DNA of 64,000 bases, taken from NCBI GenBank assembly GCA_052426225.1, contig JBNJNM010000008.1:1674001-1738000 (forward strand), written 5' to 3'. Both the position numbers and the translations under genes were made by a program. The notes beneath the pieces were generated by a model. The model made no database searches. It saw only the letters and a list, made by a program, of their open reading frames with translations, and was not told the DNA's origin. Of the stretch, positions 7,941-59,446 are shown in pieces. The first letter of the stretch is position 1. Each line of letters opens with the position of its first letter. The stretch is from Zancudomyces culisetae HAW-14-8 (taxonomy: Eukaryota; Fungi; Kickxellomycota).

Positions 7941-9440
7941 ATGGTAAGTACCAAGGATATATATACATTTGTTGTTATACCATATTTTTAAATCGGTCCG
8001 TCATGCGTGTGTTACAACTCAATACTGCACCATTATCGTTATTTCTATGAAAGCCGATATTTGAATAATTGAAATGTCAAGGATTTGAAAGCAATAAAAT
8101 TGGATTCAACTCGGCTATATCTGTTTAAATTAAACATGATTTTAAAAAATGCGATGCGATGGAATTTATGATTAAACGATGTGTCGAGTATACTTGTGAT
8201 GTATATTCACGAAAAAGGAGACGACTTTAACTCGTCATTCGATCCAATGTACCAATAAAAAGTGTTTTCAGTATCTAACATTTGTATTTTATAATTTAAA
8301 CAGGCAGCAAGACCAGTAGTATCAATCTTCAGCTCCAAGGGAGACAAAGTCGACTCATCAGCAGTCCCACTCCCATCGGTATTCACCACACCAATCCGTC
8401 CAGACTTGATCCAGTTTGTTCACAAGAACATGGCTAAGAACCACCGTCAACCATACGCCGTTGCAAGAAACGCCGGTGAACAAACCTCAGCCGAGTCATG
8501 GGGTACTGGTCGTGCCGTTGCACGTATCCCACGTGTAGGTGGAGGTGGTACTCACCGTGCCGGACAGGCTGCTTTCGGAAACATGTGTCGTGGTGGTCGT
8601 ATGTTCTCACCAAACAAGGTGTGGCGCAGATGGCACGTAAAGACCAACACTAATCAAAAGAGATACGCCGTTGCTTCAGCTGTAGCTGCATCAGGTGTCA
8701 CCTCCTTGGTTATGTCACGTGGTCACAGAATCGAGAAGATCAACGAAGTTCCTCTCGTTATCTCCAATGACGCCGAGTCATTGACCAAGACACGCGATGC
8801 CGTAGCTCTCCTCAAGGCCCTCAATGCCTACGCTGACGTCGAAAAGGTTCTTGCTTCCCGCAAGGTCAGAGCTGGAAGAGGAAAGATGAGAAACAGAACT
8901 CACCGTCAACGTCTCGGTCCTCTTGTTGTATACGCCACCGACAACGGAATTACTCGTGCTTTCCGCAACATCCCAGGTGTTGAGCTCACTCAAGTCTCTC
9001 GCTTGAACCTCTTGGATCTTGCTCCAGGTGGTCACTTGGGTAGATTTATCATCTGGACTCAAGCTGCCTTTGAGGCTCTTGAGAAGGTCTTTGGATCAAC
9101 CACTGTTGCCAGCGAACAAAAATCCAACTACACTCTGCCACAATCCATCCTCTTCAACGCTGACATTACCCGTATTATCAACTCTGCTGAAATCCAATCC
9201 GCTCTCCGCGCCAAGGGTCCAGCCAAGGTTAAGCGCCCATACACTCAAAAGAAGAACCCACTCCGCAACAGAGCCGTCCGTGTCCGCCTCAACCCATATG
9301 CTCAAACCGTTGCCCGTAACGAGATCCTCGGTGTCAACAAGAAGTACACCAACAAGAACCAAAAGACCAAGAAGCTCATCCACAGAGCCAAGCCAGAATC
9401 CGCCTCAAAGAAGTTCGTCACTCTCCTCAAGTCTGATTAA
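7941..9440 (+). CDS. RPL4: 60S ribosomal protein L4 (uL4); ATG exon 7941-7943, intron 7944-8303, exon 8304-9440
   Basis: ATG|GTAAGT ... CAG|GCAGCAAGACCA gives [10 protein letters not shown]. Also [17 protein letters not shown] and [10 protein letters not shown]. Strong codon bias. Confidence 0.97.
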
Positions 9441-9657
9441 GTATGTTTTTTCTAGGCTTGTTTCACTGTCTTGTTTAACTAGAATTTTAATTGCTCCATG
9501 ATCCATCTTAAAGGTTAAATAAACAGTTGTTAACTATATATCTTTTTTCTCTGCTGTTTTGCAAGCAAGTGGATTGTATATTTTATTGAGTTGCTAAACA
9601 TATGAAATGACTTGATTGTATTCAGTTCTAAAAAATAGTGGTTTATACAGTTGGTTC

Positions 9658-10041
9658 AAAGACAAGTCGAATATTACAAAGTGGATAAAGGAAGTTGGAG
9701 CAGGCCGACAAAGGAATTGGGTCGACTTACAAGCGGCCTTTCCACAGTACATGAAACACATTCTTTTCGTAGGTCGAATTCGAATAGGCCAATTTTGGAC
9801 CGCCACGAGATTAGCAAATTCGGGTTTTATAGATCCAGATTACAAAGCCAAATGTCCGTTCTGTAAGAAAGAAGAAAAAGAAACAGTTGAGCATTATTTA
9901 TTAGATTGCAGCAGATGGGACGAAATTAGGAAGGATTTACTTACTGAATTTATAGATTTTTATAGTTCTTTTTTATCTAGCACGATTTCCGAGTGTGTTG
10001 AGCTTCGCAGGAAAATCGTGGGTAAACTCCTGGGGGAGGAG
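9658..10041 (+). mobile_element. Internal ORF2 fragment of LINE family A (no 3' end)
   Basis: Near-identical to 10749-11131 and to the full-length element (KDKSNITKW...GKLLGEE). It ends abruptly where the next copy begins. Confidence 0.9.
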
Positions 10042-11410
10042 TGCAGCAATGGTGTCAGAGGTGGGACATGAAGGTGAATGCTAGCAAGAGTGCGATTATG
10101 ACAGTTGAAGCAGTGAATAGAACAAGTGACGAAAACAACAATAATATTGAAATTACGATTCCAGAATACTTTTTGGGAAGTGCAAAAGTACCAGAAGTAG
10201 ATGAATATAAATACTTGGGTGTTATATTCAATAAATATTGGAATAACAAGCTACACATACAGGAGAGGAAAGAAAAAGTACAAAGAGCAACCATGAGCAA
10301 CTACTATCTACTCAAAGACAGAAATACACCGCTGTTGATGAAAAAGATGGTAATTAGGTCGATAGTCATTGCGGTCGCTGGGTATGGAGGTGAAATGTTC
10401 GGCATGTCTGAAGCAAGGGTAAAACCGATACAGCAAGCTGTGGACAACACATTAAGAATAGCCATGGGAGTGGGCAGATCGACATGCATGAGGAGATTGC
10501 GAGAAGAATTAAATATAACAGATATTTACAGTAGAACGACCAGAGCTAGAGACAGAGCATTCCATAAATGGAGTGGCATGAAAACATGGATAGCAGATTT
10601 AATACAGAACCCCTTCAAACACTCGAAGGACACTTGGGTCACAGGGTACACAAGGTGGTCTAACAGATTCAACAGGATCAAGATTGATAATGTACCAACC
10701 GGAGAGGTAAGAAAAACTAAGGAGACACTCGAGATAAACAACAGGTTGAAAGACAAGTCGAATATTACAAAGTGGATAAAGGAAGTTGGAGCAGGCCGAC
10801 AAAGGAATTGGGTCGACTTACAAGCAGCTTTCCCGCAGTACATGAAACACATTCTTTTCGTAGGTCGAATTCGAATAGGTCAATTTTGGACCGCCACGAG
10901 ATTAGCAAATTCGGGTTTCATAGATCCAGATTACAAAGCCAAATGTCCGTTCTGTAAGAAAGAAGAAAAAGAAACAGTTGAGCATTACTTATTAGATTGC
11001 AGCAGATGGGACGAGATTAGGAAGGATTTACTTACTGAATTTATAGATTATTATAGTTCTTTTTTATCTAGCACGATTTCCGAGTGTGTTGAGCTTCGCA
11101 GGAAAATCGTGGGTAAACTCCTGGGGGAGGAGTTAAAGCTCAAACTACCTGGGATTCTTCGGGATCCAAACGCCACTTGCGTTAGAGCAGTGGTTTCCAC
11201 AGCCCGGTTTCTTAACGAGACCTTTTTACCTCGCTACCTAGTGTTGAAAGATATTAGTGTAGTCCCACTCCCCTTGAACCAATGCCCATCGGGTACGGAG
11301 ACTCTAGAGAGTCGAAGGGGAATAGGATGAGTTTAGAATATAGATTGTTTTTATTTTTAGGAACTTTTTATTTTCTAAATAAATTTTTTTTCTACCGAAA
11401 AAAAAAAAAA
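10042..11410 (+). mobile_element. 5'-truncated LINE family A copy (RT C-terminus, Zn finger, 3'UTR, poly(A))
   Basis: Matches the ORF2 C-terminus of the full-length element from MQQWCQ onward, then a 3'UTR with AATAAA and an A-tail. Confidence 0.95.
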
Positions 11411-11726
11411 ATAAAAATAAAATTTGTAGGACGACTCCTTGGAGGGGAGTCAAAAAGAATGGTTACTCTCTCCGTTAAGAAGAGAGAAACCGAAGCACCG
11501 TCTTTGGATGAGCTGGTAACGACACAATTTTTGGACGGAATATGTCGAACCAGCATGCAAATCTTAGACCGACTTATATCAGAAAAAACCTCCTTGAACC
11601 AACGCCCGGTGGGTATGGAGTCTCTAGAGCGACGGAGGGGAATTGGTTAGCTAGATATTTTATAGGATTATTTCTTGTAGTTTTATGGGATATTTATTTA
11701 ATAAATTCATCTATCATAAAAAAAAA
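11411..11726 (+). mobile_element. 3' end of related LINE family B with poly(A)
   Basis: Encodes KFVGRLLGGE...LNQRPVGMESLERRRGIG*, homologous to the family A terminus KIVGKLLGEE...LNQCPSGTETLESRRGIG*. It has a different 3'UTR and an A-tail. Confidence 0.9.
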
Positions 11727-12924
11727 TTGGTGCTGACACTACTGAGCATATTGTGTCGATCATGGGGATTGCGAACCACCTAAATGATCAAAAGTTTATT
11801 GACTACTGCCAAACTCAGGTGAAGAAACTTAAGCGAAGAAAGTGGCCGTTTAATTTGAAAATATTTGGTTGGGGTTACAACTAGTTTACTATGCCGTGTG
11901 TAGACTAGTGTGTTGTATTTTTATCTTGTGAACAGTCACTATCCAATGCTATTTGGTTGATATGTGTATTTTAGTTATCTATATTAACAAAACTTTATCT
12001 ATAATTTAGAGATATATTTGTTAAAATGTGTTGGCACGCTTTGTGGATATTGTTTTTTGTAGAGTATGAGTTTTACGACTTATTTATGAATAAAATTCTT
12101 AGGATAACATTACTACCATATAATTTCAGATTGGCCAGTGAATAAAATAAGTGATCTATCGATGTAGTAAAGTATTAGATATTATTATGTTCCTTGATGT
12201 CTCGCACAAGTTGGTTTTTTTTAGCTATCTCCTATTAATCGAGGTACAGTTTATTTCGAATATATTGGTTTAAACATCTCATTAAGCTTGACTCAATACC
12301 CATATATTGAAGAGTATAGAAATTAATACAAGTTCAGATGAATTTTAAAATAATATACAATACATTGATTTGTATTTTACTATATATAAATTAGATATAC
12401 ATTGTTGCTAGTTGAAATATTTATCAGGTTGAATAAATCATTCAAGTTTGACATTTATTAAGAATTAAATAATAAAATAGGTTTATTAATCTTATCTAGT
12501 ATATGAGCAGTTAACATATACAATACTAAAAAATATTTCAATCATTTGTTTCTTATAATATAAATACTAATATATTTGTAATTCAGATTGCAATACCAGA
12601 AAAAAAAGTATAAAAGCAATTGTAAAAGATGAAAGAAAAGGAAAAAGTTGAGAGAATGGTAGTAGGAATTAAGAGGAAAGAGAAATAGCGATATGGCTTT
12701 GAATCAAGTTGTGTGTGATCTTGTAGTGCGGGAAATACAACTTTATGGACATTTAGATAGCTTGGTTGAATATTTGCTCATTAAATGATTTCAGCCAGCG
12801 TGTGGTTAGATTATGGGAACTCTCAAAGAGATTAGCACATTTTAATAGTAACACACGTGAGGATGGAAGGTTTTTCCATGATTCTAGAGAACCCAGGCTT
12901 TGGCCGAGTTTTTACATTCATTCA

Positions 12925-13047
12925 AAACCAGGTGGGTTATTAAGTTCATAGCAAAGACAGAAAGGAATTGGTTAGGTAGATATTACACAGGATTCTTTTT
13001 TTGTAGTTTTATGTGGTATTAATTTGATAAATCCATCTAGCAAAAAA
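12925..13047 (+). mobile_element. Degenerate family-B-like LINE 3' end
   Basis: aaccaggtgggt...ggaattggttaggtagatatt...ttgtagttttatg...ataaatccatctagcaaaaaa aligns by eye with the B 3' end (59320-59446). Confidence 0.75.
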
Positions 13048-13850
13048 TATAGATTAACCTTCTAAGTACAGAAAGTACTACGTGTACCAAAATCGGACTG
13101 CTCATTGACATAATAACACTAGCTATCCTTTTCAATATCTTTAATTACTTGTGTTGGCACAAGCATCGACCAAGTGTGTAGAATTCATTGACTACCATAC
13201 TTGTGCTGGAGTGTTTGGCACATATCATACCGCCTGACTGGGATGTACTCTTGGCAGATAAAACCAAATGCTGAAAAAAACAGCTCATCTTATACAATTT
13301 CAACCATGAGAGGCCTTAAGGTTGCCAGTGCACTATTCAGCAGATCTATTCTTTTTTGTTTGGTTTTTATTTGCTCTAAGAAATGAATATCACGTGGGTT
13401 TCGGTTTTGGTGGTTCTCAAGATGTATTCCCCTTCACTTGGCATATCTATTGGTCAGGTTGTTTGTTTTGCCAACAAGTATTCAGTATAATTTATGTAAA
13501 TTACTCGCAAACAATCTACAAAGATGAATAATTTACAATCTACACCAAATATTTCTTGGAATTGAGATTTGATTGCTTGAAAACACAAAGAAAAATACAT
13601 TCCAATAATTCTGATAAATGAAAATAAAGATAGTAAATACAATATTCAACAGTATTAATGGTTTCATCAATTTTTATTCTCTTTTGTTTTTAATCAACAT
13701 CGAATTATAGGTGGAATTGATTTATGGATATGTAGGAAAATACTATATAAATAGAGCAAATATTTCATTAAAATACATAACTACACTTATTCTTAACTCC
13801 TTTTAACAATCGATAGATACGAGGCTAATATATAATAAAAAGTAATAGCA

Positions 13851-14951: not shown

Positions 14952-15167
14952 AGTCATCAATGGCTTTTTGAACTATATGTTGATGCTTAATTAGCTTTTT
15001 TCGTACAGATGAATTTAAGATTGCGATTGATTGTTGTGTCCGATAAGTACAAAACTACAGTCTAAGTGTTTTACCATCTATAAAATCAATTAACTTTTAT
15101 CCTTAATAAAATACCTTGTATTTCACCATGATAAAACACATTGAGTTGAAATAGGGTAGAGATCTGA

Positions 15168-15282
15168 TGGTGGGGCATGGAGTTCCTAGAAGAATTGAGT
15201 AGGGTTGGTTAGGTAGATTTCGTGTAGAACTATTATTGTAGTTTCTGTGGTGTTTATTATTGATCTAATTATTAAGACAAAA
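15168..15282 (+). mobile_element. Degenerate family-B-like LINE 3' end
   Basis: ggggcatggagttcctaga...gggttggttaggtagattt...attattgtagtttctgtgg resembles B ggtatggagtccctaga...ttggttaggtagatatt...ttgtagttttatgg. Confidence 0.65.
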
Positions 15283-15544
15283 CGTATAAAATCAAATGAA
15301 GTATTTATTAGATTTTGTATTATCATAAACTCTATAAAAGCAAAAATTTTAAATTGCTATATAATAAACAACAATACCTTTCTATGATAGAAACAAAAAA
15401 AATAGCATTAAGAAAGTCGTTTTGAGGAATTGTGAATCTAGTGAACCATGGTATATTAAAGTATACCAAACATAAAATAACTCTAGTTTAAAGCCACTGA
15501 GTATGTTGCATTGATGATGCGTACTAAAATTACAGGGGTTTTCT

Positions 15545-24470: not shown

Positions 24471-25457
24471 TAAATTGTGATTCTGTTTTCTTGAAAGTTA
24501 AATAAACAGTTTAGATGTAAAAGTCAATGTGTTTATTTATTACAAAACATCTAACAAGCAAATATCAAAAAATACTAATAAGTTCATTTCCTTTGTAATA
24601 ACAAAACCTGATTTGGTCGAGATATTGAGGAAGGTTATGCCCCTAAAAACCTATTTGCTCAATTTTTTTTTTCTTTTCCCTTCACCTTTATAGTTGTTAT
24701 TACCTTAGAGACATTTACTTTGTTTAAAGACAATTTGGTTCCTGTATCGTAACACAGCTCTTTATAGTAAATACCCCCCCAAAAAACATATATTTGCTAT
24801 TGATCTAGAGTCAACCTACAAACATCCAATTACCAATATGAATAATTCCAAGTCAAAACAAATTGACTTTTGACTTTACTAGATCTTTGTTAATTTATAC
24901 ATACATTTTGTTTTAACTATATATTTTTTATAGTACAATTTAGTTATGTTGCACCCAACAAGGTTTGGCTCACCATAGTAGTTGCTATCCAACTCAACCG
25001 AGAATAATAAGCTGACTATCTAACATTTTGTTTACCATGATTTCAAACAGTTTTAAAAAAACATTTAATGCTTTATTTTTATTTCGATATCACAATAGTT
25101 TCTATATCTCGTTTCTAGACACAGACTCCAAAACCACTACTAGGTTTTGAACCTACTAAGATTCCATATTTTTTTCCCCTCTTAATATTTATATTGTATT
25201 TTGTTAAACTTTTTGACTGAACGATATTAGGCCAGTCTACCAAAAGTTGTAACTCAACCAACTATTTTAACATTAAATATTGATGTTTTGAAAATACTAG
25301 AAGCTGGTCTATCCAATATTAATATTATAATATATTTTACTATTATACACTGTGGTTCTTGTGTAATCACTTTATTTTTGTAAAATAGAACATAGAGTAT
25401 ATTTCATTTAACGTTCAACACCAATGTACAATCAACTACAATATCTGAGGACAGTTA

Positions 25458-25716
25458 TTTTTTTGCTTAGATTTATTTATTAAATAAATATCACATAAAA
25501 CTACAAGAAATAATCCTATAAAATATCTACCTAACCAATTCCCCTCCGTCCCTCTAGGAACTCCATACCCACCGGGTGTTGGTTCAAGGAGGTTGTTTCT
25601 AGTTTAAGTCGTTCTAAGATTTGCGTGCTGGTTCGACATACTCCGTTCAAAAATTGTGCCGTTACCAGCTCAACCAAGGACGATGCTTCGGTTTCTCTCT
25701 TCTTAACAGACAGAGC
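25458..25716 (-). mobile_element. LINE family B 3' end with poly(A)
   Basis: Encodes LSVKKRETEASSL...LNQHPVGMEFLEGRRGIG*, followed by the B 3'UTR and an A-run. Confidence 0.9.
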
Positions 25717-25845
25717 TTTTTTTTGGTAGAAAATAAAATACATTTAGAAAATAAAAAGTTCCTAAAAAAACAATATATAATATAGACTCATCCTATTCTT
25801 CTTCGACTCTCTAAAGTTTGCGTACCCGGTAGACTTTGGTTCAAG
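25717..25845 (-). mobile_element. Short diverged LINE family A 3' end with poly(A), abutting the B tail
   Basis: cttgaacc...gggtacg...agagagtcgaag...aataggatgagt...tttctacc aaaaaaaa matches the A terminus. Confidence 0.85.
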
Positions 25846-32166: not shown

Positions 32167-32405
32167 ATTTTTAGTTACTTTTCCCTTTAGATTAGCTGCT
32201 GTATGAAAACACAGCTTTTATTGATGTCATTCTTCTAGATTAGCCATTAAAACTTTTTATATTCTGTAGATTTGAGGAAAAGCCTTTAGCCTTGTTACTC
32301 ATTAATTTGAAACTATTTCAGTGTTATATTAATCATTCTAAACTCAGTATAGAATGCTCGAGATGTCTTTTATCGCAGAAAAAAGATTATTTAGATAACA
32401 AACAG

Positions 32406-32503
32406 TTTTTTGTGTTAGTTGGTTTTATTAAAAATATATCACATTGGATTACAAAATAATTCTACATAACATCTATCTACCGATTTCCCTTCAATTTTTA
32501 TTC
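32406..32503 (-). mobile_element. Degenerate family-B-like LINE 3'UTR at the distal end of the RPS28 stack
   Basis: Reverse strand aagggaaatcggtagatagatgttatgtagaattattttgta...atttttaataaaaccaactaacacaaaaaa aligns with the B 3'UTR. Confidence 0.65.
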
Positions 32504-32526
32504 TTTTCTCAATATTTATCTGTTTA

Positions 32527-33023
32527 TTTTCTGTAGAAAAAAAATTTATTTAGAAAATAAACAGTTCCTAAAAATAAAAACAATCTATATTCTAAACTCA
32601 TCCTATCCCCCTTCAACTCTCTAGAGTCTCCGTACCCGATGGGCATTGGTTCAAGGGGAGTGGGACTACACTAATGTCTTTCAACACTAGGTAGCGAGGT
32701 AAAAAGGTCTCGTTAAGAAACCGGGCTGTGGAAACCACTGCTCTAACGCAAGTGGCGTTTGGATCCCGAAGAATCCCAGGTAGTTTGAGCTTTAACTCCT
32801 CCCCCAGGAGTTTACCCACGATTTTCCTGCGAAGCTCAACACACTCGGAAATCGTGCTAGATAAAAAAGAACTATAATAATCTATAAATTCAGTAAGTAA
32901 ATCCTTCCTAATCTCGTCCCATCTACTGCAATCTAATAAGTAATGCTCAACTGTTTCTTTTTCTTCTTTCTTACAGAACGGACATTTGGCTTTGTAATCT
33001 GGATCTATGAAACCCGAATTTGC
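32527..33023 (-). mobile_element. 5'-truncated LINE family A copy
   Basis: Starts at gcaaattcggg (ANSGFID) directly after the poly(A) of the next copy and runs through the A 3'UTR. Confidence 0.93.
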
Positions 33024-33595
33024 TTTTTTTTTTTTTTTTTTCGGTAGAAAAAAGAATTTATTTAGAAAATAAAAAGTTCCTAAAAATAAAAACAATCTAT
33101 ATTCTAAACTCATCCTATTCCCCTTCGACTCTCTAGAGTCTCCGTACCCGATGGGCATTGGTTCAAGGGGAGTGGGACTACACTAATATCTTTCAACACT
33201 AGGTAGCGAGGTAAAAAGGTCTCGTTAAGAAACCGGGCTGTGGAAACCACTGCTCTAACGCAAGTGGCGTTTGGATCCCGAAGAATCCCAGGTAGTTTGA
33301 GCTTTAACTCCTCCCCCAGGAGTTTACCCACGATTTTCCTGCGAAGCTCAACACACTCGGAAATCGTGCTAGATAAAAAAGAACTATAATAATCTATAAA
33401 TTCAGTAAGTAAATCCTTCCTAATCTCGTCCCATCTGCTGCAATCTAATAAGTAATGCTCAACTGTTTCTTTTTCTTCTTTCTTACAGAACGGACATTTG
33501 GCTTTGTAATCTGGATCTATGAAACCCGAATTTGCTAATCTCGTGGCGGTCCAAAATTGACCTATTCGAATTCGACCTACGAAAAGAATGTGTTT
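33024..33595 (-). mobile_element. 5'-truncated LINE family A copy (host of the full-length insertion; its 5' stub is at 39579-39615)
   Basis: A-family ORF2 end, 3'UTR and an 18-nt poly(A). The sequence continues at 39579-39615 through the TSD. Confidence 0.93.
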
Positions 33596-33685
33596 TTTTT
33601 TTTTTTTTTTTTTCGGTAGAAAAAAAAATTTATTTAGAAAATAAACAGTTCCTATAAACAATTAAAAACAATCTATAATCTAAAC

Positions 33686-36600
33686 TCATCCTATCCCCCT
33701 TCGACTCTCTAGAGTCTCCGTACCCGATGGGCATTGGTTCAAGGGGAGTGGGACTACACTAATGTCTTTCAACACTAGGTAGCGAGGTAAAAAGGTCTCG
33801 TTAAGAAACCGGGCTGTGGAAACCACTGCTCTAACGCAAGTGGCGTTTGGATCCCGAAGAATCCCAGGTAGTTTGAGCTTTAACTCCTCCCCCAGGAGTT
33901 TACCCACGATTTTCCTGCGAAGCTCAACACACTCGGAAATCGTGCTAGATAAAAAAGAACTATAAAAATCTATAAATTCGGTAAGTAAATCATTCCTAAT
34001 TTCGTCCCATCTGCTGCAATCTAATAGGTAATGTTCAACTGTTTCTTTTTCTTCTTTCTTACAGAACGGACATTTGGCTTTGTAATCTGGATCTATAAAA
34101 CCCGAATTTGCTAATCTCGTGGCGGTCCAAAATTGGCCTATTCGAATTCGACCTACGAAAAGAATGTGTTTCATGTACTGTGGAAAGGCCGCTTGTAAGT
34201 CGACCCAGTTCCTTTGTCGGCCTGCTCCAACTTCCTTTATCCACTTTGTAATATTCGACTTGTCTTTCAGTCTGTTGTTTATCTCGAGTGTCTCTTTGGT
34301 TTTTCTTATCTCTCCGGTTGGTACATTATCAATCTTGATCCTGTTGAATCTGTTAGACCACCTTGTGTACCCTGTGACCCAAGTGTCCTTCGAGTGTTTG
34401 AAGGGGTTCTGTATTAAATCTGCTATCCATGTTTTCATGCCACTCCATTTGTGGAATGCTCTGTCTCTAGCTCTGGTCGTTCTACTGTAAATATCTGTTA
34501 TATTTAATTCTTCTCGCAATCTCCTCATACATGTCGATCTGCCCACTCCCATGGCTATTCTTATCGCGTTGTCCACGGCTTGCTGTATCGGTTTTACCCT
34601 TGCTTCAGACATGCCGAACATTTCACCTCCATACCCAGCGACCGCAATGACTATCGACCTAATTACCATCTTTTTCATCAACAGCGGTGTATTTCTGTCT
34701 TTGAGTAGATAGTAGTTGCTCATGGTTGCTCTTTGTACTTTTTCTTTCCTCTCCTGTATGTGTAGCTTGTTATTCCAATATTTATTGAATATAACACCCA
34801 AGTATTTATATTCATCTACTTCTGGTACTTTTGCACTTCCCAAAAAGTATTCTGGAATCGTAATTTCAATATTATTGTTATTTTCGTCGCTTGTTCTATT
34901 CACTGCTTCAACTGTCATAATCGCACTCTTGCTAGCATTCACCTTCATGTCCCACTTCTGACACCATTGCTGCATCATGTTAAGAGCTTCTTGCATCTGT
35001 TCTGGGGTGTCTGACAATAAAACTGTATCGTCTGCAAATAGTAGTCCCGGAATTTTTTCTTGAATTCCTGGTACTTCTATTCCCTCCATTCCTTCAAATA
35101 TATCGTTGATAAAAATATCAAAAAGCATTGGTGAGGCTGGGCATCCTTGGCGAACACCTCTTTCGAAGTTCATCGCCTCCGATAATCCATTTCCTACCCT
35201 TACTTTTATTTTTGCGTTATTATAGAGTTCTTTAATTACTGCCAGTAATTTACCATTAATTTTGTTCATTTTTAATTTTTTGAATAATAAATTGTGTTGC
35301 ACTTTGTCGTAGGCTTTTTCAAAATCAATAAAACAAATTATGGTTTTTGTATTATTGATTTTTCGCCTTTTTATAATTTCGTATAGCGCTGTGGCTTGAG
35401 CTACGCATTCCTCCAGTGTCCTGAATCCCGCTTGCTCTTTTGCTAATAATATATGTCTATTATCTATTAATCTTAATTTATTAGCGACTATTTTGGCTAT
35501 AAGTTTGGTTATGGTTGGGATTAGCGAAATCCCCCTATAATTGTTTGGGTCTTTAGTGTTTCCTTTTTTGAAAATAGGAACGATTACGCTGGTATTGTTT
35601 TCACTGTTTAACTTTGGATTATTCCAGAATTTTTTAATTATGGTTAATAAAAGTACTGCAAGTTCCGATTCTGGATCTTCATCGCTCTGTATAAATTTCC
35701 AGATTTCGCTCGGAATGCCATCTTCACCCGCTGCTTTGTTTCTCGGAGTTTCTTTTAGCGCTTCTTTAACTTCTGTCCATGTTGGTTCTTCGTCGCATTC
35801 TCTGAAGTAGTCCACTTCCTCCTCTCTTTCTTCTGGGATTGTGTTTAATGCTGAGTTTTCATTCTTCGATAGCTTGTAGAAATGTTTTATCCATACTTTG
35901 AGTTTTTCTGCCTCCTCTGTTATCTCCCTTCCTGATTCATCCAGGACTCCTCCGTTATTAAACACAGATTTTTTATTTAGAGCTCTCATTTTTAACCATC
36001 TCCACATCGTCTTGGCATCATTGCCTTTGATGTGTTCACATAGTTTCACTAACTCCTTTTTATTATGTAATTTTTGGTCACTTTTTATTAGCTTTGAAGT
36101 TTTAGATTTCATCTGGACGTAATCATTATAAAACAGCTCTTTCTCGTGTTCATCACAAGTTCTGAGCATTTTTTTGAACAATTTGCAACGAAGTTTGATC
36201 ATCTTTCGCGTTTTTTTACTTAAAAAATGTTGATTTTTTTTGGCTTCGGAATTTTTTTCGGCCAATTTCTCATTATTTTTTGGGTTTGGATTATTTTTTC
36301 TTGTAATCTTATCCATCAATTTTTTAGTCTCATTAACGGTTTCACTGATTAGTTCGTCAGTTTCGTTAAGAGATGTCAAAATTGAAAATTTATTGTGAGT
36401 TCTGAACAGTTCTGATTTTTGGTCCAATAGTTTCCGGTTGACAATTTTTTTTTGCTGCTCTGGTTTAATTTCCTCAATGGTAAAGTTGGCTGTAATAGCC
36501 AGATGATCACTGAGGTCAATTTTTTTGTGTAGTTTTGTTGTCACGAATTGTCCTACTGTGGGGGTATAAAAGATGTGATCGATGGTGTTCTTCAGTCGCT

Positions 36601-37432
36601 TTTTTGTTATCCTAGTTCCGCTTCGTTTCCTTGTCGGGGCTCTCCTGACTATACACCTGAGTTTTTTCAACCATGGTGTGACGATGCTCGTCCTCATGTT
36701 GAAGTCTCCGCATAGTATTATTTTTATTTCTCTGTTTCTACCGTATTCTTTGTTTATAAAGTCTTCTACTTCCTTCTTCATCTGTGTCCTTTCTCTGGGC
36801 TTGTGTGGTGTGTGTACATTCACAACCATCACTTCCAGTCTTTTATGCTCCTTTTCTGTATATCCATGTATTTTTGCGGCCATCCAGGTATTATTATTTT
36901 TATACTCCTCTATGTGCCAGCCAATATTTTTTTTTACCCCCACTAGAAGACCAGAACCCGTCTTTAGTGTCGGCCTTTTTGACTCTACACATGTGTAGCC
37001 ATTTATGTTCATCCTCCCAGACTTCTCCTGCAGGTGGGTCTCCTGCAAGCATAGTATGGTTGGATTTACTTTGGTTAAAAAATAATCTAATTCATATTTT
37101 TTATTTTTTATTGAGCATACGTTGTATGTCATTATTTTTAGGTTAATTTTTTCATTTTTTTTTTCAATTTTTTTTTGGTATAAATTTTTTGTTTTTTTGT
37201 TTTTTAAATTTTTCTCTCTTTCATTTTTATTTTCTTCAACTTTTAGTATACACTTTAATTTTTTTTCCAACTTCAATTTATTTAGGTCGGTAATGCGAAT
37301 CATGGAGCCGTCGATTTTTTGGATTTCGAAGCGGTAAGATTTATTTTTCTGTTTGATTTTTTTAACGTGTAAATTTTTTTTTTCGATTTTTGTGATGAAC
37401 GAAAAAAAATATTTTACAGTTTTCTGAGACAA
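33686..37432 (-). CDS. LINE ORF2: APE endonuclease, reverse transcriptase and C-terminal CCHC zinc finger
   Basis: IMTYNV, LCLQET, CGDFN, IDHIF and SDH (APE); KAAGEDG, NYRGISL, FIDFEKAYDKV, GVRQGCPASP, LFADD and YKYLG (RT); CPFC...EHYLLDC. The ORF opens at TTG and the first ATG is at 37303. Confidence 0.97.
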   Translation of the reverse strand: MSQKTVKYFFSFITKIEKKNLHVKKIKQKNKSYRFEIQKIDGSMIRITDLNKLKLEKKLKCILKVEENKNEREKNLKNKKTKNLYQKKIEKKNEKINLKIMTYNVCSIKNKKYELDYFLTKVNPTILCLQETHLQEKSGRMNINGYTCVESKRPTLKTGSGLLVGVKKNIGWHIEEYKNNNTWMAAKIHGYTEKEHKRLEVMVVNVHTPHKPRERTQMKKEVEDFINKEYGRNREIKIILCGDFNMRTSIVTPWLKKLRCIVRRAPTRKRSGTRITKKRLKNTIDHIFYTPTVGQFVTTKLHKKIDLSDHLAITANFTIEEIKPEQQKKIVNRKLLDQKSELFRTHNKFSILTSLNETDELISETVNETKKLMDKITRKNNPNPKNNEKLAEKNSEAKKNQHFLSKKTRKMIKLRCKLFKKMLRTCDEHEKELFYNDYVQMKSKTSKLIKSDQKLHNKKELVKLCEHIKGNDAKTMWRWLKMRALNKKSVFNNGGVLDESGREITEEAEKLKVWIKHFYKLSKNENSALNTIPEEREEEVDYFRECDEEPTWTEVKEALKETPRNKAAGEDGIPSEIWKFIQSDEDPESELAVLLLTIIKKFWNNPKLNSENNTSVIVPIFKKGNTKDPNNYRGISLIPTITKLIAKIVANKLRLIDNRHILLAKEQAGFRTLEECVAQATALYEIIKRRKINNTKTIICFIDFEKAYDKVQHNLLFKKLKMNKINGKLLAVIKELYNNAKIKVRVGNGLSEAMNFERGVRQGCPASPMLFDIFINDIFEGMEGIEVPGIQEKIPGLLFADDTVLLSDTPEQMQEALNMMQQWCQKWDMKVNASKSAIMTVEAVNRTSDENNNNIEITIPEYFLGSAKVPEVDEYKYLGVIFNKYWNNKLHIQERKEKVQRATMSNYYLLKDRNTPLLMKKMVIRSIVIAVAGYGGEMFGMSEARVKPIQQAVDNAIRIAMGVGRSTCMRRLREELNITDIYSRTTRARDRAFHKWSGMKTWIADLIQNPFKHSKDTWVTGYTRWSNRFNRIKIDNVPTGEIRKTKETLEINNRLKDKSNITKWIKEVGAGRQRNWVDLQAAFPQYMKHILFVGRIRIGQFWTATRLANSGFIDPDYKAKCPFCKKEEKETVEHYLLDCSRWDEIRNDLLTEFIDFYSSFLSSTISECVELRRKIVGKLLGEELKLKLPGILRDPNATCVRAVVSTARFLNETFLPRYLVLKDISVVPLPLNQCPSGTETLESRRGIG

Positions 37433-37547
37433 TTCTGGTATGTTGAGTACCAGTAGTTTATCAGTTATGATATTTGTTGTTATTTTTGTTTGTGTTGTTG
37501 TTGTTGTTATTGTTGTACTTATGTATTTCTGTTACTTGAATAGGATG

Positions 37548-39209
37548 TTAATCCATTACATTTATCGGAGATGAAGGAGGGTCTTCCTCCATCTCCGCAT
37601 CATGGATGCTGGGACCGATTTGATTGCTGTTGTCTTGATCCGGAGGTTTTCCGGTTCCGCTGTCTTCCGCCTCGCCGTGTGGTGCCTCTTGCTGGTTTTG
37701 CGTTTGATTCTGTTCCTGTGCTTGCTGTTGTTCTTGTACTTGCTCTTGTCCTTGTTGCTGCTCTTGTCCTTGTTGCTGCTCTTGTCCTTGTTGCTGCTCT
37801 TGTAGTTGTTGTTGTTCTTGCCCTTGTTCCTCTTGTTGTGGCTGTGCTTCCATTCGTGTCTCCCCTTCTGCTGTAAGTGATTCTCTTTCTATTCTTTCTT
37901 TTACTTCTTTTTCCTTCATCGCAAGCTTTTGTGCCAGCCTTATGACTGCATTGTCTTCCTTATTTTTTTTTTGTTTATTGATCTTTTTGATCTGTTTTTG
38001 TTTACTGCTTTGTTTCAGTATTTTGAATTTTTGTTTTTTTGTTTTTTTTTTACTAATGTTGTTATTAAAGATAACTTCGTTGATGATATTTTCCACCTCC
38101 ATGTTTTCTGCTTTCTCCAGTTCTGCTTGTTTTCGTGCTTCCTCTTCATTTTGTACTCGTTCTTGTTTTTCCTCTTCCGAGTCGTAACCTTCGTCCATAC
38201 GACTTTCGTAGTCGTCGTCAAAGCTTTCTTTATCGCTTGCCCTTTCCTTCTCATTTTCATTTTCATTATCAGCTTCGTTTTCCGCTTCCTTTTCGGCTTC
38301 TTTTTGCTGCTTTTCCCGTTCCTGGCGTTTTTCCTGTTCTTGTTGTCTTTTTTTTTCGTGTTGGTTTTCTAGTTCATTCTGCATTTCTAACTCCTTATTC
38401 ATTTCCATTTCTTTTTGTCTCTCCTGTTCAATCTGGTTTTTACCTTCTGTTATCATTTGTTTTATTTCTCTGTACCTGTCTGGTCTGTTTCTTTTTCTTT
38501 GTTTTGCCAGTTCAGGGCATTCACTCTTCCAGTGACCCTCAATCTTGCAGTATGTGCAAGAGGCTGGCGCCCCATCCCAGATCAGATTGATCTTTTCATC
38601 CTTTACCACTATTGTTGTAGGCAGTTTAGCTCCCTTGTGCATCCTTATTAGTACCTTTAGGCTGTTGACAACGAAGTGATCGTTGCCCGCCACCCTTAAT
38701 GCCATAATGTCTGCAATCTCACCATAGTGCTTCATTACTTGGTATAGATTTGCGACGAATCCATGGATCTCATCGTTCTTGAATGATGGTATGGTCACCA
38801 CTTTCGTTACTTCTGTGTGTTGAAAGGTGTTCCACAGATCTAGCTCCTTTCCTGACACAGTTTTTTTGATCTTTCTAGCCGCTTCTGCGTCTTCCACTGT
38901 TTTGAACCAGACAAACAGAACTCCTCTTTCTCTGTCTTGGTCGAATGATACTTCAAAGTCTTTTAGGGTATCAGAGATCTCACCCATTGCTGCATCATAG
39001 TTTGCGTTGATGCTTCTGGTTCGGATGGCGAGTTTTCGCTCATCTCTGGTTCTGCAAACAATCATATTCCCTACATCGGGTCTCTCATCGACCCAGTGGA
39101 GGATAGAGTATTGTTGGTAGAGCATCGCTCTACCTCCTCTTGCAGCTTGGTAGCTGCCCCTTTGCGCAGTTTGCGCATAGGACTTTTCTTTCGTCTGCGT
39201 TGATGCCAT
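37548..39209 (-). CDS. LINE ORF1 (gag-like): RRM-like region, CCHC zinc knuckle, coiled coil, Q/E repeats
   Basis: CTYCKIEGHWKSEC (CX2CX4HX4C), YGEI motif, E/K/Q-rich coiled coil and QEQQQG repeats. Lies upstream of ORF2. Confidence 0.92.
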   Translation of the reverse strand: MASTQTKEKSYAQTAQRGSYQAARGGRAMLYQQYSILHWVDERPDVGNMIVCRTRDERKLAIRTRSINANYDAAMGEISDTLKDFEVSFDQDRERGVLFVWFKTVEDAEAARKIKKTVSGKELDLWNTFQHTEVTKVVTIPSFKNDEIHGFVANLYQVMKHYGEIADIMALRVAGNDHFVVNSLKVLIRMHKGAKLPTTIVVKDEKINLIWDGAPASCTYCKIEGHWKSECPELAKQRKRNRPDRYREIKQMITEGKNQIEQERQKEMEMNKELEMQNELENQHEKKRQQEQEKRQEREKQQKEAEKEAENEADNENENEKERASDKESFDDDYESRMDEGYDSEEEKQERVQNEEEARKQAELEKAENMEVENIINEVIFNNNISKKKTKKQKFKILKQSSKQKQIKKINKQKKNKEDNAVIRLAQKLAMKEKEVKERIERESLTAEGETRMEAQPQQEEQGQEQQQLQEQQQGQEQQQGQEQQQGQEQVQEQQQAQEQNQTQNQQEAPHGEAEDSGTGKPPDQDNSNQIGPSIHDAEMEEDPPSSPINVMD

Positions 39210-39578
39210 ATCTTCGCAGACGTTTCTTAGGGTTTTTTTGGATTTAAGGTCAGTTAAATTTAGTAGATTTAGGTTTAGATTTATGTTCAGTTGGACTAAA
39301 TGTGTCGAGATCAGTACTAATCTCGGTTTAGACGTGTTTTTTATGAGTTTTTTATGACCTTTTGGGTACTTTTTACTATGTTTTTTGGGTTTTTTATAAC
39401 TTTTTTTGTTATCTTTTTGTTATCTTTTTATGTTTTTTCTTATGTTTTTTTATTGCTATATATCTTTTTTTTTTCTTATGGTTTTTAATGTTTTTAGGCT
39501 TGTTTTAAAGGTAATAATTTATTTAAGATGTTGTGTGATTTTAGTCGCTGTCAATAGTCGATATCGCTATATTTTTCC

Positions 39579-39615
39579 CGAAAAGAATGTGTTTCATGTA
39601 CTGCGGAAAAGCTGC
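39579..39615 (-). mobile_element. 5' stub of the host LINE A copy, including the TSD
   Basis: The reverse strand gcagcttttccgcagtacatgaaacacattcttttcg is ORF2-internal sequence (AAFPQYMKHILF). Confidence 0.9.
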
Positions 39616-39835
39616 ATCTTGTTTCTATACGCACTGATATAGCTGTTTAGCTAAAGATTATTCATAGTTTGTTGTACTTTTTAAAAAACATGAACTGTAA
39701 CATACGCACTGTGGTTCAATTAATATATAATATAAAAACAATTGTTTATTTATTTCATGATTACATGATCAACGTATATTCAACAACACTAACATAAAAA
39801 GAAAGAGACACTATGCAGTGGCCTTGTCATTTATT

Positions 39836-40572
39836 TTAACGGAGTCTACGGGCTTCACGTTCGGACTCGAGCAAAGTCAAGATATCGTTTTCGCGTACTG
39901 GTCCCTTAACGTTACGGATGATTGATCTAGATGTGTCGTCCATGAATTCAACTCTGACTTGAGTGACACCACCACGTGATCCTGTACGTCCGAGTACTTT
40001 GATGACTTTAGCAAGCTTTACTTGTGTTTTTTGGTCCTATAAAATTTGATTTAAAGACAACAGTAAGTCAAAATGCGCACAGAGGCTCGAATGAATCAAA
40101 AGAATATATACTGCCAACAAACGAGTTATAATATACATCTCACTAAAACACGCCCAATCCCTTCTTGTAGAAGTTCATTATACTGGTTTTATCCAAAACA
40201 ACCACTAACTGTAATAGATTTGCCCAACTACACACATGCGTACTGTAAAAAGAAATGCAGCATGTATCCATCAACCATAAACTCGACCATACAACACATC
40301 ACCAATGCAGATTGTTCCCTTCAAACCAAAACGCCTGCTCCGACAACATATCTCCCTTATCAAAGCGCTTTTGTTTCGACTGTATACCCTTCACGCCCTT
40401 CATTATTCGAATTTTTCGTTCCCACACATTCGTCAACATGCACTTTTATATACACATCGTTTGGATTCAAATAATACGCCATGGATTCGATATAAAATAA
40501 ATCTAAAAATCTTCTGGCGGTTGTACAAGTTCTCAAATGGACAGTATTATGCTGTATAAGATGACTTACCAT
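39836..40572 (-). CDS. RPS28: 40S ribosomal protein S28 (eS28); ATG exon 40572-40570, intron 40569-40037, exon 40036-39836 (absent from the ORF track)
   Basis: [67 protein letters not shown]. Confidence 0.97.
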
Positions 40573-55294: not shown

Positions 55295-57057
55295 TTCCAC
55301 TTTGTAAAAGGAGGCTCAATAGTTTAAATTCAATCTTTTTTTTTCTCCAGTCTTGCGGAAATACAGTAAAATATATGCCTAAATCGATACTACTCTAATG
55401 TTTTATTTTGTTATGTCTGTTCGTAAACCCTTTGAACGCTTTTAGACCATATTTAACTCTTTCTGACTTTAGCGCAATTCAAGCAAATTCCGAATGAAAA
55501 TAACGTGGGAATAAATTCATCCGATTTTTTGTCTGAGCTCAAAAATCCTGAGGATCAGTTAAAATGGAAATTGGCTATTTCTTTTTGTTTTTACTTGCAG
55601 TAAATAAATGCCATCCATAAACGAGAGAAAACATAAAGCGCTAATGGGCTATCTCACATAAAAAGGCTATTTTCTCATCCAATATAATTAAAAAGTTAGC
55701 TAGATTTACGTAATTGTTTGCTATTGAAACCAACAAACAATAATTTTTTTCTGCGATTCAACTTATCCTAGACAAATCGTTTACGCCAATAGTTTGTCTT
55801 TGCAGGCCCACTGCAAACTATGACCACTTGTTACAGGGTGAGTCTTGATCAGGAAAATGCACCTAAAATTATTCATTAAGCAAGTATCATTCTAAAACAC
55901 AGCTGAGCAATATTGTGTTTGTGAAAAAAAGGAAAGGGGCGTATATGTGTATGTATGTACTTATATGTTATTCATGCGTGTATTTATGTGTGCCTTATTA
56001 AAGATAGGACGGGGGAAATACTGGAACAATTGAATTGGTAAATGCTCTTGCGAGTGATGTGGAATAAGGATGGAAAACTAGAGTATGTTATTTATAAAAA
56101 AATACAAGTTTAGCTCCAGAAGCTTTTGGTTTGTAGTTTTGTTGAGTAAACAGGGAACGGGAATATCGTAGTTAGTGATAATATTGCGTATGCATCCCCG
56201 CTCAGCTAGAACAAACCTCATAGCTTATATCTTTTCTTAAAGGTCTTTTTTTTTAAAAAAAAAAAAAGGTATGAAAGCTAGCACTTGGTCTTTCGGAAAA
56301 AGTGACCAGCAGCTTTATAGTACTGCTAACTAAACCGTTGACCCAAGAAAGTCAGATAGTCGCCTTGATGGCTAATGAAAAAATTGGCTTGATATTAAAA
56401 TGTGATCATGTGTTACGCATCGTAATACGCAAAGAGTCTATACCAATCTCTAAAAAGAAGAAAAATAACACAAGCCCAGTTTAAACGCTTTGAAAGGATT
56501 TTACAAGAAAGAGCTGGTATTAGTGTATAAAATGCTGGTAAATACTAACAACAACGCAGGTAGGCAAAACAGTTTCTATGCTTTCAAAAGACAAAAAAAG
56601 AATATTCGTACGCAGGCCAAAACGGGTGGGGGAGTATTACATTATTTCTCTACGGGCTCTACTGCTACTAATATCATTACATAGCCATCTCACTAGTAGA
56701 CAGTTTTTTTTCACTTTTTTAGAGAAATCTACTATACTATCTTTATAGTTTCGGCAAACACTTTGGCAAAACTACGGTAAAAAATTTTTTTATCAAAACC
56801 AACATCCCCAGGTCTAAAATGAAAATTTTAAATGAAATCAAAATAAAGGAGAAATAGATTAGCCAATTTGCTAGGAACTCAAATGGGCCAATAGCAATTT
56901 AGATAAAAAAATTTCAAAAAAAAATCGAGGATAGAGTAGAAAGCTGAAAAAAAATCAGGAATAATAGAATAAAAATAATAATAGTAACACTTTTCAAAAT
57001 TATCCTTTTTTTTTCAAGACTATAGGTAATAGTTTGGTGGAATAAAGTACTAGAAGA

Positions 57058-57959
57058 ATGGGTAAGTTTAAGTCAGATATATGATATGTTAAGTCTAGAA
57101 TTGAACAATGATAAGCGGAGTGATATGTTAATGAAAAGCATATAGTAAGAATCAAAAATTGGAACGTACTAATTTTGGATTCAATTAGCAAAGCGAGTTT
57201 AATAATCGATTTCGGATTGCGGCTAGTACCGCGCTATTTAATTTGAATCCTTAAAACTTTAAGAATTAAATAAGCAAGTGTGAAGCAGTGATGTGTCAAC
57301 GGTCAGAAATTTAACAGAACATGAATATTTAAATACAATTAGGTATAAGTAGAGATTCACGCCACAAGCGTTCACACACTGGTGCCAAACGTGCCCACTA
57401 TAGAAAGAAGAGAAAGTTTGAGCTCGGACGTCAACCAGCAAACACCAAGATCGGAGCAAAGAGAATACACGAGGTCAGAGTTAGAGGTGGAAACAGAAAA
57501 TTCAGAGCCTTGAGACTCGAAACAGGAAATTTCACATGGGCATCTCAATCTACCACCCGTAAGACACGTATTGTTGTTGTGTCATACAACGCCTCAAACA
57601 ACGAGTTGGTTCGTACAAACACCTTGGTTAAGGGATCAGTTATCCAAATTGACGCAACTCCATTCCGTCAATGGTACGAAAACCACTATGCTTTGCCTTT
57701 GGGAAAGAAGAAGCGTCAAGGAAAGGATGCCAATGAGGAATCTGAGGAATCCAAGAAACGATCAAACCACTTGATGCGCAAAGTTGAGGCACGTAGAGAT
57801 GATGCTAAGATTGACCAACATCTTGAAGAACAATTCAACTCCGGCCGTTTGTATGCTATTATCACCTCACGCCCAGGTCAATCTGGACGTTGTGATGGAT
57901 ATATTCTTGAAGGCAAAGAGCTCGACTTCTACCTAAGAAAGATCCGCTCCAAGAAATAA
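57058..57959 (+). CDS. RPS8: 40S ribosomal protein S8 (eS8); exon 57058-57061, intron 57062-57342, exon 57343-57959
   Basis: [18 protein letters not shown]...[18 protein letters not shown]...[19 protein letters not shown]. Confidence 0.97.
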
Positions 57960-58094
57960 ATGATACTTCTAGTATATATTCTTTGTCTTTGATAAATGTT
58001 TGACTTTTCATTACAACCTTTATAAATAAACTATTTATTTAATTTGGTTGTGTTTCCAAACAAATAAATATGTCTTCACATGTATTTCTTGTAG

Positions 58095-58275
58095 GTAGGT
58101 GAATAGAGGAGTGCTTATGTTTTTGAGGAGGGGTAATAAAGAAAAGATGAAAAAGTATATTGGATCGGAAAAGGACAAAACAGCGAGGAGCGTACTATTA
58201 GAAAGATGCTCTCGTAATGACAAGTCTAAAATCTCAAGATGGCTGTTAGACAGGAATCTCGAGGGAATGAGTAAA
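58095..58275 (+). mobile_element. Divergent LINE ORF2 fragment (probably family B)
   Basis: The translation ...RNDKSKISRWLLDRNL resembles the A ORF2 stretch LKDKSNITKWIKEVG. It abuts the A copy. Confidence 0.55.
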
Positions 58276-59128
58276 AGCATTCCATAAATGGAGTGGCATG
58301 AAAACATGGATAGCAGATTTAATACAGAACCCCTTCAAACACTCGAAGGACACTTGGGTCACAGGGTACACAAGGTGGTCTAACAGATTCAACAGGATCA
58401 AGATTGATAATGTACCAACCGGAGAGGTAAGAAAAACCAAAGAGACACTCGAGATAAACAACAGGCTGAAAGACAAGTCGAATATTACAAAGTGGATAAA
58501 GGAAGTTGGAGCAGGCCGACAAAGGAATTGGGTCGACTTACAAGCGGCCTTTCCACAGTACATGAAACACATTCTTTTCGTAGGTCGAATTCGAATAGGT
58601 CAATTTTGGACCGCCACGAGATTAGCAAATTCGGGTTTTATAGATCCAGATTACAAAGCCAAATGTCCGTTCTGTAAGAAAGAAGAAAAAGAAACAGTTG
58701 AGCATTACTTATTAGATTGCAGTAGATGGGACGAAATTAGGAAGGATTTACTTACTGAATTTATAGATTTTTATAGTTCTTTTTTATCTAGCACGATTTC
58801 CGAGTGTGTTGAGCTTCGCAGGAAAATCGTGGGTAAACTCCTGGGGGAGGAGTTAAAGCTCAAACTACCTGGGATTCTTCGGGATCCAAACGCCACTTGC
58901 GTTAGAGCAGTGGTCTCCACAGCCCGGTTTCTTAACGAGACCTTTTTACCTCGCTACCTAGTGTTGAAAGATATTAGTGTAGTCCCACTCCCCTTGAACC
59001 AATGCCCATCGGGTACGGAGACTCTAGAGAGTCAAAGGGGGATATGATGAGTTTAGATTATAGATTGTTTTTATTTTTAGGAACTGTTTATTTTCTAAAT
59101 AAATTTTTTTTCTACCGAAAAAAAAAAA
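58276..59128 (+). mobile_element. 5'-truncated LINE family A copy with poly(A)
   Basis: Near-identical to the A ORF2 end from agcattccataaatgg, followed by the 3'UTR and A-tail. Confidence 0.95.
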
Positions 59129-59446
59129 GTAAATAAATAAAATTTGTAGGACGACTCCTTGGAGGGGAGTCAAAAAGAATGGTTACTCTCTCCGTTAAGA
59201 AGAGAAAAACCGAAGCACCGTCTTTGGATGAGCTGGTAACGACACAATTTTTGGACGGAATATGTTGAACGAGGATACAAATCTTAGACCGACTTAGATC
59301 AGAAACAACCTCCTTAAACCAACGCCCGGTGGGTATGGAGTCCCTAGAGGGACGGAGGGGAATTGGTTAGGTAGATATTTTATAGGATTATTTTTTGTAG
59401 TTTTATGGGATATTTATTTAATAAATTCATCTATCATAAAAAAAAA
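59129..59446 (+). mobile_element. LINE family B 3' end with poly(A)
   Basis: About 12 differences from 11411-11726 over about 315 bp (counted by eye). Contains an in-frame TGA. Confidence 0.92.

Follow-up and report, generated by a model that had tools for sequence, protein, structure and literature searches.

The fungus Zancudomyces culisetae HAW-14-8 (Kickxellomycota) carries two families of apparently L1-type long interspersed nuclear elements (LINEs), A and B, which probably integrate by target-primed reverse transcription (TPRT) at sites where gene context, and not DNA sequence, decides, the young family A being found almost wholly at genes for components of the ribosome. We examined a stretch of 64,000 nucleotides (nt), hereafter the window (C8:1674001-1738000, in an assembly of 27 Mb in 25 contigs), in which an earlier note had described LINEs stacked in sense orientation just downstream of every cytosolic ribosomal-protein (RP) gene and had proposed that integration is tethered to the 3'-end zone of strongly transcribed genes. 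The genome is compact, with 36% GC and short intergenic regions; the HiFi genome paper of Z. culisetae reports 27.2 Mb and 8,484 genes (PMC12611240).

The genome was searched with the full family-A element and with its 3' end, and the upstream flanks of the matches were inspected for genes. For the family-A census, a 30-nt pattern from the A tail was run over the genome, with the reversed pattern as control. The RP genes were identified through Pfam in 17 cases, and the remainder were recognised from the translations of open reading frames (ORFs), as for RPL27A, RPL39, RPS3, RPL11, uL2, eL20, RPL23, RPL37 and RPL36. This mapping, which the earlier note had proposed, retrieved 56 family-A 3' ends and none with the reversed pattern, and bore out the association: 48 of the 56 ends sit in stacks behind 28 RP genes, RPS5 being a 29th, whose A copy has a variant tail. 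When loci are counted, 29 of 34 lie behind RP genes (P = 5e-54, with 80 RP genes among 8,484 genes), and all 29 are in sense (P = 4e-9), with up to six family-A ends at one gene and stacks of up to 16 kb. Four further ends (4/56) are found behind a Stm1/HABP4 gene, on C21 and the duplicate contig C19; the product of this gene is 99% identical to an annotated Z. culisetae protein. Stm1, a ribosome-associated protein, is the only certain non-RP target of family A. Of the A-type loci, five do not follow an RP gene: the Stm1 locus, L033 (at an ankyrin gene), L015, the L013/L014 pair, which is duplicated, and a copy truncated where contig C16 begins.

These counts bear directly on the notion that insertion is random and is followed by purifying selection, copies surviving only where they do no harm, between the terminator of one gene and the promoter that follows. 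A genome of 8,484 genes in 27 Mb (PMC12611240) would favor such a process, as would the age of the family-B copies (78-96% identical) and the fact that RPL3, whose convergent neighbor ends 270 nt away, is empty. However, selection cannot explain why 1% of the genes should have 85% of the copies of a young family behind them, or why a single gene should be hit up to six times, nor can it force one orientation on promoter-less fragments of 300-600 nt, and kilobases of neutral DNA downstream are unused. Selection alone is thus contradicted, and we regard it as very improbable.

Several arrangements in the assembly deserve mention in their own right. RPL12, RPS3, RPL32 and RPL15 lie within ~65 kb (C21:2582000-2645000; L010, L026-L028, L020, L012) with a LINE stack at each, and the RPS3 stack spans ~16 kb with six A ends. 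At the divergent pair RPL39/RPL36 (L004, C8:1154760-1159060), both genes are followed by a family-A copy of their own, located in the 3' flank and in sense with the respective gene. Near-identical duplicate loci also occur (C19:16310-17587 versus C21:2324989-2326269; L035/L040, L036/L039, L050/L059, L062/L063, L013/L014), and are segmental duplications or uncollapsed haplotigs.

The distance between stop codon and first LINE-derived base, measured at 26 RP loci, ranges from 110 to 742 nt with a median of 223 nt, and 17 of the 26 values fall within 165-262 nt. In the usual case the first AATAAA is 40-160 nt past the stop codon, and most insertions are located ~60-170 nt beyond this hexamer. Inspection of the stop-to-LINE spacers of the long-distance outliers (RPS16, RPL39, RPL27A, RPL35, RPL10 and others) revealed no hidden repeats, only unique sequence. 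It is known that L1 forms chimeras with abundant RNAs, and the stacks could in principle be an artefact in which RP-mRNA/LINE chimeric retrocopies arose by template switching, or in which a Pol III (RNA polymerase III) gene lies hidden behind the RP genes. The data contradict the chimeric retrocopies: the RP genes have introns and a GYF-Prp19-RPL4 synteny conserved in three Smittium species, and a spacer of 110-740 nt of non-mRNA sequence, usually with no poly(A) at the junction, separates gene and element. A hidden Pol III gene is opposed by the lack of any tRNA or Rfam match, and the probability of either artefact is practically negligible.

Six single insertions in unique DNA, at RPS16, RPL27A, RPL15, RPL35, RPL39 and P2, are bordered by target-site duplications of 11-15 bp; the seventh, at RPS24, lies within a family-B copy, with a duplication of 14 bp. 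No resemblance was seen among the seven duplications, the 150 nt before the junctions share no k-mer other than AATAAA-like words, and neither ARAGORN nor Rfam detected a tRNA or RNA family in 32 insertion flanks. Since the duplications have no sequence in common and no tRNA or Rfam RNA lies nearby, targeting is positional and not sequence-specific. The differing duplications and truncation points, together with the repeated hits at the same genes, identify the family-A insertions as independent TPRT events.

Resident copies are often hit, at times twice at one internal nick site, and this raises the question of a sequence-specific or self target, that is, a motif common to RP terminators or homing into resident copies seeded behind RP genes. 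In keeping with self-targeting, several stacks hold copies starting at ~5239, 5589, 5618 and 5641 of the element, and tandem copies with the same start exist. On the other hand, the interruption points in resident copies range from the 5' untranslated region (UTR) to position 5818, and the six single insertions lie in unique, unrelated DNA with unrelated duplications and no common motif. Self-homing is thus excluded as the primary rule, and sequence- or self-targeting as a whole, which these observations contradict, is extremely improbable.

As a separate observation, A copies with common internal starts (~5589, 5618, 5641) are found at L032:5961-6922, C21:2623227-2624190, window positions 32515-33024 and C15:862277-862753, and copies starting at ~5233-5245 of the element occur at six loci. 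This suggests that nick sites within resident copies are used repeatedly, with homology-assisted 5' joining.

The nick sites show a weak L1-like preference, with an A-run at the 5' edge of the duplication in eight of 10 cases, and the sense strand is A-richer in the last 20 nt before the junction (36% A). These features would suit a model without any specific tether, in which nucleosome-free gene ends are simply the most accessible sites and the preference of an L1-like endonuclease for A-runs on the sense strand (before or at the start of the duplication in 8/10) provides the orientation. Open chromatin downstream of transcript ends is indeed known to attract some transposons (PMC7337890), and family B is not specific for a gene class. 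Nevertheless, this model leaves unexplained why at least 52 of the 56 A events are at RP genes or Stm1 while EF-1alpha, GAPDH, enolase and eIF5A are empty; promoters are nucleosome-free too, yet they are unused, and a weak A-run preference cannot yield 29/29 sense insertions. We therefore consider accessibility by itself unlikely, although it is one of the two main rivals to targeting by gene context.

Family B provides a second view of the same zone. A pattern census recovered only 23 of its ends, the family being too diverged for such a search, so that all B figures are lower bounds. Among 22 non-redundant family-B loci with a long ORF upstream, 21 share the strand of the nearest upstream ORF (P = 1e-5), and 17 of these 21 lie 140-341 nt behind it. 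The upstream genes encode an MFS transporter, a LIM protein, a protein kinase, a RasGEF, a Rua1-like regulator and a NamZ-like enzyme, and family B is also found behind RPS25, RPL13 and RPL23, with B or B-like remnants beneath the A stacks at RPL4, RPS8, RPS28, RPS24, eL8, RPS15A, RPS14, RPL11 and RPS3. Family B thus has the same sense placement at gene ends without the gene-class specificity. Given the age of B, its pattern may owe more to selection.

The loci of EF-1alpha (two), GAPDH (two), enolase and eIF5A, judged by coordinates, have no A end in the contig region and no B match among those listed. EF-1alpha and GAPDH are each present in the assembly as two identical copies. RP genes take a very large share of Pol II (RNA polymerase II) initiation in growing yeast, and integration could be proportional to the number of Pol II termination events, RP genes dominating through their share of transcription; this is a sub-variant of the tether model that needs no RP-specific factor. 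The abundance of Stm1 as a ribosome-associated protein would agree with it. It is at odds, however, with the absence of A copies at these six loci of classic top-expressed genes and with the presence of family B behind kinase, RasGEF and transcription-factor genes, and we judge it improbable. Both main rivals are weakened by the RP specificity. For the same reasons, and given the LIM and transporter genes among those preceding B, the suggestion that strong transcription determines the sites is doubtful; the data point to specificity for the RP regulon rather than to transcript abundance, although they are not decisive.

A number of observations weigh against targeting by gene context and, in part, against its restriction to the RP regulon. 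The test on highly expressed non-RP genes is small, with 0/6 loci occupied and P ~0.06 if these were hit at the RP rate (37%). While the association with every RP gene holds in the window (3/3), it does not genome-wide, where family A is present at only ~37% of the RP genes (29 of ~79) and ~50 have no copy; RPL3, behind which a convergent gene ends at 270 nt, has no LINE. Four of the 56 A ends were not placed (C15:233482, C15:238674, C21:803873 and C16:3956, judged by coordinates). The spread of 110-742 nt is far looser than that of tRNA-targeting elements. In addition, neither ORF1 nor ORF2 of family A has an extra recognisable domain, and no tether was pinpointed. Finally, the copies are all fixed and come from a single genome, so that post-insertion selection must have had a part in the pattern, above all for the old family B; the empty RPL3 and the ~50 RP genes without family A imply that selection also shapes which sites are filled.

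The three stacks of the window illustrate the layering of the two families. Their features, in window positions, are as follows.

8406-9440, plus strand: last exon of RPL4 (uL4), stop codon ending at 9440 (Pfam Ribosomal_L4 and Ribos_L4_asso_C; 99% identity to Z. culisetae 60S L4-A).
9518-9523, plus strand: AATAAA, poly(A)-signal-like hexamer of RPL4, read in the sequence.
9658-10042, plus strand: family-A LINE fragment, part of the ORF2 C-terminus, without poly(A), adjoining the next copy (blastn 98%).
10042-11422, plus strand: family-A LINE, 5'-truncated 1.38-kb copy with A-rich tail (blastn 97%).
11423-11728, plus strand: family-B LINE 3' end, comprising the last 70 ORF2 codons, 3' UTR and A-tail (at least 42 genome copies; continues the B ORF2 of locus L037).
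12923-13047, plus strand: decayed B-like tail remnant, farther downstream of the RPL4 stack (self-blast 80-81%).
25455-25845, minus strand: old A-like and B-tail remnant, an exception with no same-strand gene upstream.
32400-32514, minus strand: B-like 3'-end remnant, the lowest layer of the RPS28 stack (likeness to the B tail judged by eye).
32515-33024, minus strand: family-A 5'-truncated copy, 510 nt, with poly(A).
33024-33595, minus strand: 3' portion of an older 613-nt family-A copy that the full-length insertion interrupts.
33596-39578, minus strand: near-full-length family-A LINE with poly(A) tail (Pfam domains).
33686-37432, minus strand: ORF2 of this copy (APE, RT, zinc-binding domain).
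37548-39209, minus strand: ORF1 of this copy (RRM and CCHC).
39579-39615, minus strand: 5' 37 nt of the older 613-nt family-A copy, including the first LINE base behind RPS28.
39745-39750, minus strand: AATAAA of RPS28.
39836-40036, minus strand: last exon of RPS28 (eS28), stop codon ending at 39836 (ORF translation).
57333-57959, plus strand: last exon of RPS8 (eS8), stop codon ending at 57959 (ORF translation).
58132-58275, plus strand: family-B ORF2 fragment (tblastn 84%, blastn 87% to B).
58276-59142, plus strand: family-A 5'-truncated copy (0.86 kb) with A-rich tail.
59143-59448, plus strand: family-B 3' end; the A-to-B junction is identical to that of the RPL4 stack.

The coordinates given by the earlier note for RPL4 (stop codon at 9440, AATAAA at 9518-9523, sense LINE from 9658) and RPS28 (39836, 39745-39750 and 39615, also in sense) were reproduced exactly, and no window copy interrupts a host coding sequence, as it had stated. 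At RPS8 the stop codon and the sense family-A copy at 58276 were likewise recovered, but LINE-like sequence starts at ~58132, where homology to B ORF2 begins, and not at ~58095. The interval from stop codon to same-strand LINE is thus 173-221 nt at the three genes. The order of layers is A fragment, 1.38-kb A copy and B tail behind RPL4, and B fragment, 0.86-kb A copy and B tail behind RPS8, while behind RPS28 the copy at 33596-39578 is nested in the older 613-nt A copy with a 14-16 bp duplication on both sides. In each stack the youngest layer is closest to the gene, and the family-B 3' end at 11423-11728 is the oldest layer of the RPL4 stack. Beyond the stacks, 1.7-2.8 kb more of intergenic DNA stays free of insertions, and no tRNA gene or Rfam family was detected in the whole window by ARAGORN and Rfam.

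The 300-nt unit following family A was first read as a short interspersed nuclear element (SINE), and this was ruled out when it was recognised as the 3' end of the family-B ORF2 and UTR. The composite of A copy and B tail, junction included, is 97% identical between RPL4 (10556-11728) and RPS8 (58276-59448), which may reflect 3' transduction of the composite or recombination between stacks; a comparable B-A-B arrangement is present behind RPL23 (locus L042). At position 10042 an A fragment stops at element position 5818 and is followed by a copy starting at 4727, with no poly(A) in between and the rest of the fragment gone, a junction suggestive of template switching in the course of reverse transcription, or of a deletion at the target.

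Family A is ~6 kb in length. Its ORF1 (553 amino acids) gives weak RRM and CCHC matches and has a long charged tail, while its ORF2 (1248 amino acids) carries an apurinic endonuclease-type (APE) domain (Pfam Exo_endo_phos, 7e-12) N-terminal to a reverse transcriptase (RT; RVT_1, 8e-40) and, at the C-terminus, a zf-RVT match (4e-4) that is below Pfam's cut-off. No Pfam match to RNase H was obtained for the family-A proteins. The best solved relative of ORF2 is human L1 ORF2p (1e-26), and the nearest database proteins, on short contigs, are at most 33% identical. The hallmarks of TPRT, namely a poly(A) tail, variable 5' truncation and target-site duplications, are all present. On the basis of domains and these hallmarks, both families would be classed as L1-type APE LINEs. 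The family-A 5' UTR is A-rich and unstructured, its fold being no better than that of shuffled sequences (z = -1.45), and no ribozyme or Rfam structure was detected in it at E<=1.

Family-A copies in the genome are 99-100% identical, and both ORFs of the window copy are open. Since copies are up to 100% identical and the ORFs of the window copy are intact, family A is active, or was so very recently. The ORF2 of family B is 38% identical to that of A; with at least 42 copies in the genome at 78-96% identity, B is the older family. A variant element at L011/L034 (C6:2587000-2592900) and L013/L014 combines an A-like ORF2 (90-93%) with an ORF1 only 27% identical to that of A, and appears to be a recombinant or a sister family; the copy behind RPL37 belongs to it. 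Separately, the A copies behind RPS5 and RPL10A (L025, L002; L067, L081) have in common a longer, different tail followed by ~100 nt of common sequence, which may represent a tail variant or another repeat inserted in the tail.

The 5' ends of full-length family-A copies (L007, L029, L026/L027, L004, L003) were read for 5' transductions. The copies at P2, RPL11 and RPS3 open with 9-11 nt that correspond to the flank of the copy at the RPS24 site, and the RPL39 copy opens with 11 nt from the flank of the copy at the eL8 site. These transductions of 9-11 nt imply that template RNAs start, or are cut, ~10 nt upstream of the element. Such a 5' end fits an internal promoter that sets the start upstream just as well as read-through RNA of the RP gene that was then processed. 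The transductions also allow master-daughter lineages of copies to be traced.

Taken as a mechanism, targeting by gene context would proceed as follows. Both families would integrate by ordinary TPRT in a zone ~110-740 nt (median 223 nt) downstream of the stop codon, just beyond the poly(A) signal. The nick would always be made on the template strand of the gene, so that the element ends in sense. The ribonucleoprotein may be tethered to a polar feature (protein or chromatin) of the Pol II 3'-end/termination zone; young family A would be confined almost entirely to 29 RP genes and Stm1 through a feature peculiar to RP-regulon genes, while the older B would use the same zone behind any gene. 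New copies would enter this zone upstream of resident copies or within their 5' part, and as newer copies displace older ones away from the gene, ordered stacks of up to 16 kb would result. The site would serve as a safe haven in a compact genome. We put forward, as a tentative possibility, that what family A reads is not the level of transcription but a feature exclusive to the 3' ends of genes for ribosome components, for instance a factor specific to the RP regulon or a loop between promoter and terminator, and that family B represents a broader, hitherto unseen mode of gene-end homing that is conserved in Harpellales.

Traces of similar placement exist in other Harpellales. In Smittium simulii, Stm1 is followed on the same strand, ~190 nt beyond its stop codon, by a LINE ORF2 fragment that is 44-51% identical to A and B and reaches the contig end; S. 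culicis has a LINE fragment 571 nt downstream of a Pyridox_ox_2 gene with which it shares the strand. With LINE fragments behind same-strand genes in Smittium, the behavior is probably older than the genus. Past RPL4, the contig of S. simulii extends for 749 nt and that of S. culicis for 180 nt; no LINE homology was shown there, and these contig ends are only suggestive. S. angustum has a convergent gene 217 nt behind RPL4, and no LINE. Behind Stm1 of S. culicis (L089:11080-11976), the sequence as far as the contig end consists of tandem repeats of ~50 nt. Integration behind RP genes would explain why short-read Harpellales assemblies break just behind such genes.

The earlier note knew of no LINE targeted downstream of Pol II-transcribed RP genes, and our literature searches likewise found no report of a retrotransposon targeted to RP-gene flanks; the genome paper is silent on it (PMC12611240).

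Known safe havens of retrotransposons are Pol III genes, rDNA, telomeres, heterochromatin and Pol II promoters. A LINE with strand-specific homing to the terminator flank of Pol II genes, its young form at the RP regulon only, would add a class of target, and, if the proposed tether is correct, would be the first retrotransposon tethered to the Pol II terminators of one gene regulon. It would imply that a host feature marks the ends of RP genes and can be read by an L1-type ribonucleoprotein, and raises the testable question of what sets these 3' ends apart. A naturally active system with weak sequence requirements may also help to understand how TPRT machines steer to harmless sites.

When compared to known systems, family A shows no conserved target sequence of the kind used by R1, R2, Tx1 and NeSL, and no tRNA or other Pol III gene within ~20-200 bp, as for TRE5/TRE3, Ty1 and Ty3, in the window and the 32 flanks. 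Its distance and orientation relative to one class of transcription units are non-random, and genes are hit repeatedly and independently, as is characteristic of context-targeted elements. The closest known system in behavior is Dictyostelium TRE3/TRE5. These are also APE-type LINEs whose endonuclease has little sequence specificity, they keep a set distance and orientation to a transcription unit, hit the same genes repeatedly and find safe havens in a compact genome, TRE3 also being located downstream of its target gene. They differ in choosing Pol III genes via TFIIIB/TFIIIC, over a target interval no wider than a few tens of bp, whereas family A uses the 3' flank of Pol II protein-coding genes over 110-740 nt, with no tRNA gene found.

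R1 and R2 share with family A a preference for genes of the ribosome-making apparatus, sense insertion and a tolerated multi-copy state, and like it may depend on transcription of the host gene. Unlike family A, whose duplications have no common sequence and whose target is outside the gene, they cut one exact 28S sequence, R2 with a restriction-like endonuclease. Ty1, Ty3 and Tf1 are tethered to the transcription machinery or to DNA-bound factors near genes, as would be the case here, and Tf1 illustrates that Pol II genes can be used; however, these are integrase-based long terminal repeat elements whose insertions lie on the upstream side, at Pol III genes or, through Sap1, at Pol II promoters, while family A is a LINE that inserts downstream, strand-specifically and at one gene class. 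The Leishmania SIDER and trypanosomatid ingi/L1Tc-derived retroposons are LINE-derived and reportedly found mainly behind coding regions in sense. SIDER elements resemble families A and B in these respects, but they are short and extinct, lie inside 3' UTRs within polycistronic units and have no RP-gene specificity, whereas family A is active, autonomous and located beyond the poly(A) signal. Lastly, the Tx1-group elements, which belong to the same L1 superfamily and also have an ORF1 with RRM and CCHC, recognise defined repeats or small-RNA genes, and no such target was found for family A.

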